Below, in pieces: positions 5,678 to 11,400 of a stretch of DNA of 43,089 bases. Each line of letters opens with the position of its first letter. The stretch's first letter is position 1. Location of the stretch: contig JAADVB010000166.1 in assembly GCA_023334545.1 (NCBI GenBank), positions 1 through 43,089 of the forward strand. The letters run 5' to 3'. Below the pieces are notes generated by a model that worked only from the letters and a program-made list of their open reading frames with translations, searched no databases and was not told the origin of the DNA. Origin of the DNA: Salisapilia sapeloensis CBS 127946. Taxonomy: Eukaryota > Protista > Oomycota. Made by a program: the position numbers and the translations under genes.

Positions 5678-6885
5678 TCAAGTACTCTTTCGCTTCAATC
5701 CTTTCCGTCGTCGATCTTCCATCTCCTGACGTTGACACATATCCAAGTACTGTCCTTCGACCGTATCAGCATCCGTTATCCTTCCCTCCCTATCGACAGC
5801 ATGTAAGACGAAGATAAGGTCAAGAGAATACGCAACTACCTTTGGAGACGAGACTGCAAGGTTCGTTTGTGCGCGTTCGTACTCTCCACTTGACGTCTGT
5901 AAGATTCCTGTATCTCTTGTATCTCGAACAACAGTTCGTCTAGTGGAAAGTGGTGTATCGTGTATCGCCCCGACGTCTCTTCTTTCGTCGGGCCCGACTC
6001 TTTCCAATGCGTGGAGATGCATTTATCATGCAACAGCGTACGCATCTCGTCCTCGTCTATCGAAAGCGTCTCTTTCGTCGGCTTGAGAGGTGCAGAAGAG
6101 TTATCCTTTGTCTTTATAAGACTAGAGGACGATAGATTCGTGTCTATTTTATATTTGAATCGGTGGATTGACAAGTGGACAAGAGGCAAGGTACCTTCCA
6201 ATTGAAGACGAGGGTCGTTGGAGCATACTGGATAAAAGTACGAATAAACGTACAGATAATTCCACAAGCCTCTCGTAGTAGGCGGTGTTTCTAGTACGAT
6301 ACGAATAAAATGCATCCAAGAGGAGAGTAACAAGAGACTGCAGTACCGACAGACAAGTCGTTTGACACCATTTGTGCGACTTCTTCATCTTTTAACGGGT
6401 TCTCCCGTAGTTTCATTGCTCTCGATGTTGCAGATTCACCTGTCTCATTGCTCGTTTCCAACGATACGTTCTTATTGACAATAGTCGGGTCGTGCATCAA
6501 TTCCTTTTCAATGCTCGAAGTTGATACGGTCTCTAACGTGGCTTTAGGGAAGACGGTGGAAGCATTGCCATCGAGGTAGTCGCTCACGGCAACCAGTCGA
6601 CTTTCCAAGTCGGCCAATTGCGCTTCCACCTCTTGCTCGCCTTGCTAATAATGCACTTCGATGGTGAAAATGGAAATAAAGTGGTACGCAAATGGACCTT
6701 TGTACCTGCAATTCGTCGATTAAATGGGTGACGGAAGTTTTCTGATTGGGATCGAGTCCGCCAGGGGTCTCACACACACGGCTCACTTCATTAAAGTACT
6801 GGCATTGGACCCATGGAAGCCGCAATCGACGCTCCATCATTTCCCGCTTGTCTTGCATGGTTTTATCCTGCGATGTACGTAGCAT
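5678..6885 (-). CDS. Multi-exon protein, tentatively ADA3/NGG1-like (SAGA HAT module)
   Basis: ORFs 6544-6885, 6291-6629, 5836-6333 and 5678-6022 join in frame through 50-60 nt GT-AG introns. Coiled N-terminus (IDELQQGEQEVEAQLADLESRL), aromatic motif LWNYLYVYSYF, and C-terminal PLDELLFEIQEIQESYRRQVESTNAHKRTL...basic tail recall the Ada3 'DDEIL.EL..Q..L......N' region. The gene is well supported; the family call is weak. Confidence 0.45.
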
Positions 6886-7048
6886 CGTAACAGCTACACT
6901 TCAGTTAAATCATTTCTATCCCAATTGCTATCGTTCCCGCCACCTTATTCAAATTTGATTCGCTTTCCGCAAATTCACGGCTTCTTATTGGCGAATAGAC
7001 CTTGGCCACGAACTACCGTTCAGAATCACTTTCGACAGACAGAAGAGA

Positions 7049-8410
7049 ATGCCAAGAGGGAAAGCTGATCGAACGCTCACGGTCGGCAAGAAGCTCGAGA
7101 TACTCGATGAAGCTGAACGGACGGGACAGTTGGCTGTAACTGCCAATAAATACAACGTGAAACCAGGCCAATTGCGAGATTGGAAGCGAAACGAGCAAAA
7201 ATTACGCGCAACCGACCCATCTCGACTCGTCTGTGCGAGCAACGTCCAGCGTGGTCACTTGGTATTTAATGAATCATACGCACAATATTGGGTCGGGTAC
7301 AACAAATTTTGCTCGAAAAACCTTGAAACGGAATCACTTGAACATCAGCTCCAGTTACTATGGAAAGACTGTTGTCGCGATGGCATTCGTACGATAAACG
7401 CTTTGTTCCTCCAAAGGCCAATTGTACTCATCATGTAATCTAGAATGGGGTAATTATCCCACCGAAATCGATCCTACAGCCAAGCATGAGCTTGAGTTTC
7501 CAGACCACAGTACGTACAAGTACCGTATCGGATAACTCGTAAGAAATAATAATTATATGACTACTAGCGTCCATGATCGTCCCGGACGACGTCACGGAAG
7601 AATTAAAAAAGGATCTTACGAACATGCGGGAGGAGCTCGCCCAATTCTTTGACCAACAACCGTTCCCGACAAAGTACTTGTACTATGTCACTCGTCTCGA
7701 CTATGTGAAACCCAATCCAGACGAAGATGAAGAAGAGGAGGAAGGAGAGCGAGAGGTGTCAATTAACGACATCCTCTCCTTCTACGTCGCTGTCTGCTTC
7801 AATGGTTCTGTCATGGCGCCCATGGCCATTTTCCCACCGGTCGAGCCGGAGCATTGGGAGCGAAAGAAAACCATCAAGCTCCGTCATGCCCATTCGATGC
7901 ATCGGGAGAAATTCAATGACCCCAACGAAGCGCTCCAGTTTTTCTCGACGGTACGAACCTTTGGTATAGTAGAATCTAGTCGTGTCGTAACCCTTGTACT
8001 TGTAGACATGGAAAAAATATTACGATGAAGAAGCTCGATACAGTGATAAATTCGCTTTCCTACTGGACAAGAGCGTGCCTGAATTCTCTTCAGATGAATT
8101 TGTACATGGTGTAAGTCAGTTGGACGGGTATGACAAGTACTGGAAAACATTCACGACGTTGCAACAACCATTGAAAATGGCCCATTTCGAAGATATCATG
8201 AACGACTTTGTCACGGGCGAATGGAACACCGTGTTAGGTATGAAAAAGTCGGCGCAGCCGAATGATTATCGCAAGTGCGTTGCCTTTTGGTTCTTTACTG
8301 TATGGGAAATGTTTGCCGGTGAAAACGCTCGGATCGCGCTTAGGAATTGCAACATGTATCTCGAGCCGAAAGATCAATGGCGAAACACTGTCATGGGCCA
8401 AGATCTGTAG
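7049..8410 (+). CDS. pogo/Tigger (CENP-B-like) transposase-derived protein, intact 4-exon ORF of about 397 aa, degenerate DDE triad, probably domesticated
   Basis: Exons 7049-7388, 7444-7509, 7568-7950 and 8006-8410 splice in frame. Introns are 55, 58 and 55 nt, all GTACG...TAG. N-terminal HTH: RTLTVGKKLEILDEAERTGQLAVTANKYNVKPGQLRDWKRNEQKL. DDE_1-type landmarks: ILSFYVAVCFNGSVMAPMAIFP, FAFLLDKS, TTLQQPLKM, RKCVAFWFFTVWEMFAGENARIALRNCNM. Confidence 0.8.
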
Positions 8411-8443
8411 CACAGATCAAAGCATAAACAAGTTAAAAAGTGA

Positions 8444-11400
8444 TCATTCTGCTTCCTCCTCTTCCTCTTCTTCTTCTTCTACGTCTTCTTCACTCTCCTC
8501 TTCGCTTTCGTCACCTTCATCACCCGAGTCGAGAGGAGGAAAGTAGGCACTAGCCATCGTAGTGAGTAGCTGAGAAGCTCGTTGACTATCAGCGTCACGG
8601 GTGCGGAGCTTATTCGCAGCAACAAAGTCGAAATCACCAAGAGATAGTTTGCCAAACAATTCATCGACCTTTGTATCGAGCTTGGATAGCTCATCGGCAT
8701 TTGATCCGGCAGAGTCGATGGCAACGACTAACTTTTGACCTAGATACAGCTTACTTATGTCGTTAATGCCGTTCCATTCCATCAATTGCTTTGTACTTGT
8801 GCGATAGCGCATGGATAATGATTTCAGTGTTTCTCCTGGACCGAGGAGATGATACTTCTTTTTGTCTGATCCTAACGATGTTTGTATCTGCCAATACCAA
8901 AGACGAAGACACCCGTCAGACATCGCTGTAAAAATCCGTTGGTGATCGAGTTGTACATCGATGACGCTAGGGACATTGGAGTCTCCGATAGAAAGCGTTT
9001 GAAGTAGTTGACCGGTGGCAAAGTCCGTGACGCAAAGACTGCCATTGACACCTCCGCTGACGATGCAAGTTGCATCGAATTGGAGACACGTGATGGCACA
9101 TGTGTGACTTGGACACGCTCGAAGAAATTTGTGATGCATCTCAAGGTTCCAGATACACAGAACACCAGCACTATCTCCACTAACAATTTCACTACCAGCT
9201 TGTCGAATGCAAGTAATTGCGTCTCTGTGTGCCATTTCCAATCGATCATCTGCCTTATTCCTGTATTGAAGGCTGTGAATTGCTTTCCCACTACGTCGAC
9301 GATTCTTACCAACGGCGTCGGCAATACTCCATACCTTGACGCAGTGATCTGCACCTCCAGTGGTAATGGAATTCATGATGCTGTTCACAATGATAGATAG
9401 CACCGAACCTTCATGTGCCGAGATAAGTCTTGACAATAACCTGCAGCTGATCGCATCATAAATAAATACATCCTGATCTGAGCATCCGCATGCAAACCAG
9501 TTATCATCTGCAGCAATGCATACGACCGTAGCGTCAAAGTCATCAAGTAACTTTACCAGTTTGAGAAATGAGCCACCAATCACTCCATCCATAATGTCCC
9601 ATACACCTACTTTTGGCTCGACAGATCCAGAGTAAATTCGGTTACCGTAGCAACAAAGACTTGTAATCTCTTTTGCATGACCTACACGCGGCCCGAGCGG
9701 CTGTGGGCGATGGTCTCCAAGTCCTTGGGAAAGGCACGCACCGGTAAGTAGATCATAGAGGTATACAGTTGACCCAGCGGACATTGCACAGATAGAACTT
9801 CCATGACTGGCCATACCGACGACATTTCGCAAAGCTTGATTTATGTAATTGAATTGGAAGCAACGCAACGATTCTTTTGCTCGCATCCGCTTCATTAACG
9901 TACCAGTCTCTACCTTTAATTCCATTTCATATTCCTCGATGCTGTCCTGATGGTTTCTGATGCGCACTCGAGCATTCACAATGTCCCTTTCAATCATCTC
10001 ACCACCGACTTTGACACTTCCCATCAGCTTTCCAAGTTTCTTCTTGAAATCCTGCACTTCGTATCGAACAGTAGACCCATTTATAATGGTCGAATCAACT
10101 TGCGCCGAGTCCGATGCTAGCGCTCGTTTTAAATCTGCTTCACCTTGTTTTAAGACCAATTCCTTTTCCTTTCGAAGTTTACTCAGGCTTTCAATACGCA
10201 TCTGTTCCTCCCGAATGTGAAATTGGAGTTTAATTCGTTCTTGTCGAAGTTTCGGGACGGCCGGACCAACCCGTTCGAGTCGAATTTCCAATGCCGGCAC
10301 TGCTCCTGCCCCGACCAGTTGCTTTTGCAAGCGTGCCAAATGTTCATTCGCGTCGGCCAACTTTAGCTGAATAGCATGCTCAAGGTTGTCTGCAAAGACT
10401 TTACTCCTAGCTTCCATATCGGCCTCCTCCAAGGCATTGTAAACATCCGCCATTCCTCGATGGGTTGCTACTTGGCCTGGAACGCTGTCGCAGGCTTCAA
10501 ATTGCGCCATTGCTTTTTCATATTTCTCGAGTGATTTCTTGTACGAGTTTTGAGCGAAGTAGACACGCCCTTGGTGATACAATGCCCAGCCAATATCTTC
10601 CTCATCAGCTTCTTGGGATGCGTTCTCAGCTCGATTAAACATGATAAACGCCTGATCGAGTTGCTTCTGACTGTAAAATGCTTTGCCAGCGTTTAACAGT
10701 ACTTGGACGTATACTTTCGTGTCCATCTCAGCCAGGCAAGTATCATCCGATAAAAGGTATCGATATTTCATGAGTGCGTTCGTCACATCTCCTACTTCGA
10801 ATCGTGCATCTGCTTCTCGAATGAGACGTTGGAAAGGTTGCTCATAGATACTAGAACCCGTCGTTTGTTTCCTCGTTCCGTCGCTTGTGTAGACCAGTGC
10901 TTGCATATTTGACGCTGTCGTTTGTATTTCCTGTAAGACATCATGCACTTGGTAGATCATGTCTGTGCGTTCATGTACTATCTGAGCCAACTTATGTGTA
11001 CCAATTCCACCTCCCTTTGGATCTAGCTGTTTGCTAAATGCCTTCCAGCGCTGGAAACCTGTGTGAAGATATCGATTCACGTAACGTTTCAAGGCTGGTG
11101 TGACTTTTGCACGAATGTATTTCCTCCGATCACGATGCTCTACCCAAGCTTGGAAGGCTCGAAAGACGGATGCAAGTCGTATACGTTGTATGAACGATGC
11201 GATGCCCAAAGTGTCAATAGGAGGTGGATGCGGGTCCTTTTCAAACTTGGCTAGTGCCTCTTCACGTTCTTGCAACTGAACAAGAAGCTTCTCTTGACGC
11301 TTCTTGTCCCCGATAAGAAGGTTTTGCACCGTCACAATCTCTGCTTTTGCATCCACAATATACAGTCTTTCAATCTCAATCTCATCAATTAAGGCGTCAA

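Follow-up and report, generated by a model that had tools for sequence, protein, structure and literature searches.

Transposases of the pogo type have been domesticated repeatedly, giving mammals CENP-B, TIGD1-7, JRK and POGK and fission yeast Abp1, Cbh1 and Cbh2 (PMC4231638, PMC7386202, PMC7325037), and pogo elements are known in oomycetes as well (PMC7325037). Here we examine a gene at positions 7049-8410, plus strand, of a 43,089-nucleotide stretch of DNA from the oomycete Salisapilia sapeloensis CBS 127946 (assembly GCA_023334545.1, contig JAADVB010000166.1; the whole stretch is called the window below). Its product is probably a host protein that descended from a pogo-type transposase (IS630/Tc1/mariner group, DDE_1) and became fixed as an ordinary oomycete nuclear gene, with a helix-turn-helix (HTH) head, a remodelled linker and a core that lacks the canonical Asp triad.

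Like CENP-B, the TIGD proteins, JRK, POGK and the Abp1/Cbh proteins, it is encoded by a single-copy host gene and combines an HTH of the CENP-B_N/psq type with a transposase-derived RNase H-like core, which is here a predicted one. It also shares with domesticated pogo genes the loss of terminal inverted repeats (TIRs), a degenerate triad, purifying selection and a conserved neighbourhood. Unlike them, the oomycete core goes undetected by the Pfam DDE_1 profile, whereas the pogo, Tigger and POGK clusters of the ESM Atlas carry DDE_1 in 98-100% of their members; the protein has no Pfam match to HTH_Tnp_Tc5 or to a CENP-B-type dimerisation domain, is short (about 400 amino acids), is encoded across three introns and is, as far as seen, restricted to oomycetes. 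The Mos1, Sleeping Beauty and SETMAR/Metnase cores (PDB 3HOT, 4MDB, 5CR4 and 3K9J) show the same predicted fold and order of elements, with Z-scores of 9.8-12.3 over 182-200 residues, and the spacing of 35 residues between the retained Asp and the third catalytic position is mariner-like. Identity to these cores is only about 10%, however, the first and third residues are non-acidic in the window copy, and a long acidic insert lies between beta1 and beta2. SETMAR, a fusion protein, retains TIR-binding specificity; nothing comparable is known for the oomycete protein.

Gene structure, transcripts and orthologues

The exon and intron coordinates were read from the sequence and are given, like all those below for which no other contig is named, as window positions on the plus strand. 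Four exons between 7049 and 8410 make up a coding total of 1194 nt, that is, 397 codons and a stop. Transcripts were assessed with contigs of three runs (X2, X3 and X5) from another study on this organism, placed on positions 6400-9000, and with those of a DNA run (X1) that is probably the source of the assembly. The gene model is as follows:

7016-8443, plus strand: transcribed span, from one X2 contig in the pieces 7016-7388, 7444-7509, 7568-7949 and 8005-8443
7049-7388, plus strand: exon 1, start codon at 7049; 113 codons and 1 base; 65-71% identity to oomycete orthologues
7389-7443, plus strand: intron 1, 55 nt, GT..AG; skipped in contigs of X2, X3 and X5 and kept in DNA run X1
7444-7509, plus strand: exon 2, 66 nt; corresponds to residues ~117-135 of annotated orthologues
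7510-7567, plus strand: intron 2, 58 nt, GT..AG; skipped in the spliced contigs
7568-7950, plus strand: exon 3, first half of the predicted RNase H-like domain, with strands beta1-beta3 and helix alpha1 (order from the orthologue model)
7951-8005, plus strand: intron 3, 55 nt, GT..AG; contig joint at 7949/8005, the cut being ambiguous by 1 base
8006-8410, plus strand: exon 4, second half of the predicted RNase H-like domain and C-terminal helices; stop codon 8408-8410; 54-67% identity to orthologues

In each of X2, X3 and X5 one contig skips exactly the three predicted introns, and no contig of the DNA run does so. The RNA label of the three runs is presumed, and the absence of intron-less contigs from the DNA run argues for it. 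Contigs without the three introns thus show that the gene is transcribed and spliced as predicted, and it is expressed as a spliced mRNA.

Seven pieces, 57-66% identical, came out of a word search with exon 4; their contigs (L003-L008) belong to four sequencing runs and two metagenomes. As far as these contigs reach, they repeat one local order: a divergent Ada3-type gene upstream, a three-piece gene with a weak CENP-B_N match, and a convergent giant gene with fn3, WD40 and LysM domains. A whole-library profile search with the same exon, against 1.84 billion representatives, yielded only three real clusters and the family is therefore narrow; a further match in that search, the Ig-repeat protein P0010, was rejected as spurious. 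One orthologue, P0008, is a 411-amino-acid protein of Pythium insidiosum annotated as 'HTH psq-type domain-containing protein', and a search with it recovered full-length orthologues of 396-480 amino acids in more than 20 named oomycete species, belonging to Pythium, Globisporangium, Lagenidium, Phytophthora (many species), Nothophytophthora, Peronospora, Bremia, Plasmopara, Hyaloperonospora and Albugo. The exon boundaries of the annotated orthologues coincide with those of the window gene, whose product is 57-70% identical to the full-length proteins. No member of the Saprolegniales and no non-oomycete stramenopile was among the named matches, which is weak evidence of absence, and so far the known range of the family is the oomycetes.

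The Phytophthora infestans orthologue is PITG_02716, catalogued as a 'Brinker' transcription-factor candidate whose first 106 residues served as a protein-binding microarray construct (PMC11267843, Table S1). The text and supplements of that study that were searched make no mention of a transposase ancestry for PITG_02716, and the word 'transposase' occurs 0 times in the main text (PMC11267843).

Searches with the DNA, with the exon-3 protein and with a profile built from 20 full-length orthologues each found the gene in single copy in the assembly of 22.4 Mb and 1365 contigs. No TIRs flank it: an inverted-match search around the gene gave only GA-rich tracts coding for acidic residues and pairs of 12-22 nt, none of which brackets it closely. 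It sits between two neighbours, with 163 bp from the ATG of a divergent upstream open reading frame (ORF; 6885, minus strand) to 7049 and 33 bp from its own stop (8410) to the stop of a convergent ORF of 1555 amino acids (8444). Ratios of nonsynonymous to synonymous change (dN/dS), computed exon by exon with NG86 for every orthologue pair with a computable dS, were 0.06-0.33 for exon 1, 0.10-0.46 for exon 3 and 0.00-0.17 for exon 4, and the gene is under purifying selection among orthologues. Single copy, no TIRs, spliced expression, conserved neighbours, orthologues and purifying selection together identify it as a host gene and not a mobile element.

These results bear out much of a preliminary description of the locus that had been made from its letters. 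It had reported an ORF of about 397 amino acids across three canonical introns, which both the reading of the sequence and the spliced contigs confirm, the upstream and downstream spacings of 163 and 33 bp, which we recover, and a lack of TIRs, with which the inverted-match search agrees. Several of the checks that it had proposed likewise came out in favour of a host gene: all three introns are removed in the spliced contigs of three runs, the genome holds one copy by three types of search, the same neighbours recur in the six fetched oomycete loci, and dN/dS among orthologue pairs with unsaturated dS (0.00-0.46) lies well below 1. Its statement that no such protein was known to have been described in oomycetes is matched by our literature search, which gave no account of the family as transposase-derived. 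For the proposed domestication in stramenopiles, on the other hand, the observed range is the oomycetes and not the stramenopiles at large.

Head, linker and predicted transposase core

The protein features discussed in this section lie at the following positions:

7070-7210, plus strand: HTH of CENP-B_N/psq/Brinker type, residues 8-54 (Pfam CENP-B_N match, AlphaFold2 helices, Foldseek)
7223-7315, plus strand: linker, residues 59-89, at the place of the second HTH of pogo; nearly every column invariant in 26 sequences; model of low confidence
7690-7692, plus strand: Thr codon at the putative first catalytic Asp position (VTR against V-D-E of pogo); Thr invariant in all orthologues
7714-7755, plus strand: acidic loop between beta1 and beta2, from orthologue alignments; below 50 in model confidence (predicted local distance difference test, pLDDT)
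8066-8068, plus strand: Asp of LLD at the putative second catalytic position, end of beta4 (end of model strand 286-291)
8174-8176, plus strand: Lys of QPLK at the putative third catalytic Asp position, 35 residues after the retained Asp, which we place in the spacing class of Mos1 D249-D284

The window protein was analysed exon by exon, and full-length analyses were made on annotated orthologues (P0008, P0023 and others). The CENP-B_N profile scores 23.9 bits in window exon 1 (cut-off 21.2) and 27.2 bits in P0008, in both cases higher than BrkDBD (PF09607), which reaches 23.1 bits in the window, against a cut-off of 23.4, and 24.4 bits in P0008. An AlphaFold2 (AF2) model of exon 1 has helices at 12-25, 28-34 and 39-47, with pLDDT of about 85, and its top Foldseek rows are the CENP-B_N domain of fly distal antenna, the Brinker DNA-binding domain and CENP-B(1-129), at the weak E-values that such a short domain leads one to expect; the Brinker domain superposes on the model at a root-mean-square deviation (rmsd) of 1.1 over 49 residues. 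Heads of the same HTH type occur in the 'CENPB', 'Pipsqueak' and 'Brinker' groups of P. infestans (PMC11267843). From Albugo to Phytophthora, hardly any change is seen in the first 90 residues. Within them, residues 59-89 have no HTH_Tnp_Tc5 (PF03221) match, either in the window exons or in full-length P0008, and this stretch reads as remodelled, not eroded.

Downstream of the linker, sequence profiles were silent. Searches of PDB sequences with exon-3, exon-4 and full-length alignments returned nothing credible, an ESM-Atlas feature search with exon 4 gave just unnamed bacterial clusters under the recognition threshold and was uninformative, and no Pfam family beyond the N-terminal HTH types, the CENP-B-type dimerisation domain included, was credible on exon 4 or full-length P0008. 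A six-frame DDE_1 search of the genome found seven other matches, five of them intact ORFs, and not the gene at 7049-8410. Compared with these pogo-like proteins by hhalign, the family has its best local matches at collinear, expected places, a strand of the 'NADGS' type and the C-terminal 'W..aW' helix, and four short motifs follow one another in the same order as in the genome's own pogo-like proteins.

The fold was modelled with AF2 for the orthologue P0023 with 20 sequences. The model runs through a helix, beta1, beta2, beta3, a helix, beta4, a helix, beta5 and further helices, the topology, as predicted, of an RNase H-like transposase, and its core elements have pLDDT values of 70-92. Foldseek against PDB placed the mariner transposase Mos1 at the top (E 1.5e-4), with Sleeping Beauty and Metnase next. 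A VIA-align comparison with 48,161 representative chains gave Z-scores of 12.3 for the Mos1 catalytic domain (182/201 residues, rmsd 3.8), 11.8 for Metnase, 9.8 for Sleeping Beauty and about 8 for retroviral integrases. The ten nearest family sets of the ESM Atlas are all DDE_1 (PF03184, in 98-100% of members) and include Tigger-derived sets, POGK and two mainly oomycete ones. The C-terminal two thirds of the protein are thereby predicted to adopt a transposase fold of the Tc1/mariner/pogo type, and the DDE_1 neighbours in the Atlas, taken with the CENP-B_N head, point to a pogo-type ancestor and not to Tc1 or mariner. The acidic loop between beta1 and beta2 varies in length, from about 14 residues in the window to tens of Ala/Thr/Glu-rich residues in some Pythium-like orthologues (L003, L004, L006, L007, P0016 and P0017), and would be a tolerated insertion site in the modelled fold.

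The catalytic positions were placed from the strand positions in the P0023 model, the offsets to Mos1 D156/D249/D284 and a by-eye comparison with the genome's pogo-like ORFs. At the second of them, the Asp is invariant in a seven-sequence alignment of exon 4 and present in 19 of 20 full-length orthologues, the remaining one having Asn. The third is Arg in 17 of the 20, His in two and Gln in one; among the fetched loci it is Arg in L005 and L008, Gln in L006 and L007, and Asp in L003 and L004, as well as in the divergent homologue P0009. A position that varies under purifying selection is not catalytic, and the canonical triad is therefore not conserved. Most likely, judging from this placement, the core no longer cuts DNA.

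For the protein itself the preliminary description fared unevenly. The N-terminal HTH that it had called well kept is indeed recognised by the CENP-B_N profile at 23.9 bits. The second HTH, in its words mostly eroded, corresponds instead to residues 59-89, among the most conserved of the protein, though without an HTH_Tnp_Tc5 match. Its triad motifs YYVTR, LLDKS and QPLK are all present where it had put them; their equivalence to the DDE_1 catalytic positions has no significant sequence alignment behind it, though it fits the order of predicted secondary structure and the Mos1 offsets.

Weighing ancestry and activity

Descent from a pogo transposase has to be weighed against a number of observations. 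DDE_1 (PF03184) has no match at E<=10 in the window exons or in the full-length orthologue P0008; hhalign comparisons of exon and full-length alignments with the genome's five DDE_1 proteins, local and global, are not significant (E 0.05-0.6); and the exon-4 profile retrieved no DDE_1 protein from the 1.84 billion representatives. The structural argument draws on an orthologue rather than the window protein, through a model of medium confidence (mean pLDDT 61.6, predicted TM-score 0.60), and the Atlas TM-scores are 0.45-0.50 (over 229-251 residues). The triad residues were placed by inference and not by superposition, and an invariant Asp three residues after the Thr could form part of a non-canonical site. 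Between the window copy and all orthologues dS is saturated (dN 0.24-0.40), so that the figures for constraint apply to the other lineages only. The terminal branch of the window copy, at 0.66-0.73 changes per site in exon-wise trees, is some ten times the median of about 0.05 for the other orthologues, Albugo included, which means that the source organism, an oomycete or a very close relative, is deeply diverged or that the gene evolved fast there. Finally, the published 8-mer and matrix lists contain no motif for PITG_02716, an absence in supplements and not a stated negative; BrkDBD motifs are published only for PITG_17861 and PITG_19429, and motifs of the GTTAAC type for CENP-B_N proteins (PMC11267843). 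The preliminary description had itself named the lack of a DDE_1-family profile hit as something that would refute its reading, and that lack is literally what we find. Of its domesticated pogo transposase, the host gene, the transposase-like predicted fold and the unconserved triad stand, and the DDE_1 sequence match is missing, so that a pogo origin rests on the predicted fold of medium confidence and the CENP-B_N head.

Could the C-terminal domain have come from something other than a transposase, in a host HTH factor whose RNase H likeness is a modelling artefact or the legacy of another RNase H-fold ancestor? The want of significant DDE_1 similarity by Pfam, hhalign and whole-library profile search would fit, as would the mean pLDDT and the Atlas TM-scores, which do not exceed 0.50. 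We nevertheless hold this to be improbable: the matches to Mos1, Metnase and Sleeping Beauty span 182-200 residues and stand 2-4 Z units over the integrase tier, the ten Atlas family sets closest to the model all belong to DDE_1, the head is of the CENP-B_N type typical of pogo, and the four short motifs keep the pogo-like order of this genome. If the core does derive from a transposase, a Tc1 or mariner element might be proposed as the ancestor instead, the best solved-structure matches being mariner Mos1, Metnase and Sleeping Beauty. No pogo core is found among the solved-structure matches, however, and these are then merely the nearest solved relatives; every top predicted-structure family set is DDE_1, with DDE_3 just a minor co-annotation, and the head matches CENP-B_N/BrkDBD and not the HTH families of Tc3 or mariner. 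We therefore rate such an ancestor as very unlikely.

Similarly slim are the chances that the protein has kept a nuclease or recombinase activity through a non-canonical acidic set, made up of the invariant Asp three positions beyond the Thr, the retained Asp of LLD and a Glu that is conserved in the next helix. Across orthologues, two Asp and several Glu of the core are fully or almost fully conserved, but the first canonical position is an invariant Thr, the third varies freely (Lys, Arg, His, Gln or Asp) under purifying selection, one orthologue has Asn at the second, and the genome, in which the gene is single-copy, holds no TIR substrates. A pogo element that only resembles a gene, being mobile to this day or having lost its mobility recently, would be in keeping with the pogo elements and several pogo-like ORFs that exist in oomycetes and in this genome (PMC7325037); it is refuted by the single copy, the three spliceosomal introns, the lack of TIRs, the recurrence of its neighbours in distant oomycetes and a dN/dS well below 1, and we give it practically no credence. 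A further reading keeps the pogo ancestry and changes the role: an old oomycete domestication would have given an essential genome-maintenance factor, acting in centromere or heterochromatin organisation, in transposon control or in non-canonical DNA processing via the retained acidic residues, and not an ordinary transcription factor. We consider this unlikely, and nothing in these results speaks for the part in centromere or transposon control that the preliminary description had thought possible.

On the preferred reading, a host protein of pogo-transposase descent, the product is most likely a nuclear DNA-binding regulator or chromatin factor. Its N-terminal HTH of the CENP-B_N/psq/Brinker type most likely still binds DNA, and the invariant, remodelled linker (59-89) would replace the second HTH of the transposase. 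Linker and presumably dead core may supply further contacts to DNA or protein. The core would probably be a structural module through which the protein associates with itself (the usual behaviour of transposase cores), binds partners or contacts DNA without catalysis.

Related genes, neighbours and implications

Five intact pogo-like ORFs lie elsewhere in the genome:

L009:649-2484, plus strand: pogo-like ORF on contig C540
L010:1090-2745, minus strand: pogo-like ORF on contig C564
L011:688-2598, plus strand: pogo-like ORF on contig C664
L012:1000-2835, minus strand: pogo-like ORF on contig C335
L013:976-2859, minus strand: pogo-like ORF on contig C113

They encode 551-636 amino acids with an HTH, HTH_Tnp_Tc5 and DDE_1 (45-104 bits) and are 22-29% identical to one another. 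None of them has all its catalytic Asp residues, and the third position is Arg, Ala, Lys, Ser or Cys. They resemble additional cases of pogo domestication and correspond to the 'CENPB' group of transcription factors in P. infestans (PMC11267843). The related CENPB-type proteins of that species bind palindromes of the GTTAAC type, and these motifs are not enriched at centromeres (PMC11267843). The gene at 7049-8410 shares with them an N-terminal HTH and a predicted transposase core, and L009 reads QPMR where most orthologues of that gene read NPLR. It differs in length (about 400 against 551-636 amino acids), the five others keep DDE_1 and HTH_Tnp_Tc5, and they show no significant sequence similarity to its family.

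A divergent homologue of the window gene was also seen at L016:1-1117, a Logan contig of SRR17242363 (protein P0009), without the intron between exons 3 and 4 and in two overlapping frames. Its linker, elsewhere invariant, is broken by an acidic insert, and its third catalytic position is Asp (NPID). A paralogue, a pseudogene and a transcript from some distant lineage are all conceivable.

Among the neighbours in the window, the convergent downstream ORF carries fn3, TPR, WD40 and LysM domains. The X3 spliced contig runs past the last exon and over the 33-bp spacer to 8680, within the 3' end of this 1555-amino-acid gene, which suggests that the 3' ends of the two genes overlap, a contig over two genes being no proof of a single transcript. 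The upstream minus-strand gene has a 61-nt intron at 6645-6705 (CT..AC on the plus strand, GT..AG on the minus strand), confirmed by the same spliced contigs, and matches the N-terminal part of the corresponding neighbour in L007 at E 1e-7. Pfam detected no Ada3 domain in it, and a genome-wide Ada3 search was also silent, as were its controls. At 22.4 Mb the assembly as a whole is small for an oomycete. The short introns had also raised the idea of a fungal genome, which was set aside on the strength of the oomycete orthologues and the gene order shared with them; a genome search for Zn2Cys6 domains gave no match, and neither did its controls.

The gene would extend the list of domesticated pogo host proteins to the oomycetes, among which are major pathogens of crops and animals. 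It would do so with a probable transposase core that no profile detects, in proteins of which databases say only 'HTH psq-type domain-containing' or 'hypothetical'. The presumably dead core may help explain the missing motif for the isolated 106-residue head of PITG_02716; pogo-type transposases use two HTH domains, and transposases usually act as multimers. The family would also offer a tidy example, in single copy, of how much drift a transposase core tolerates while selection maintains it.

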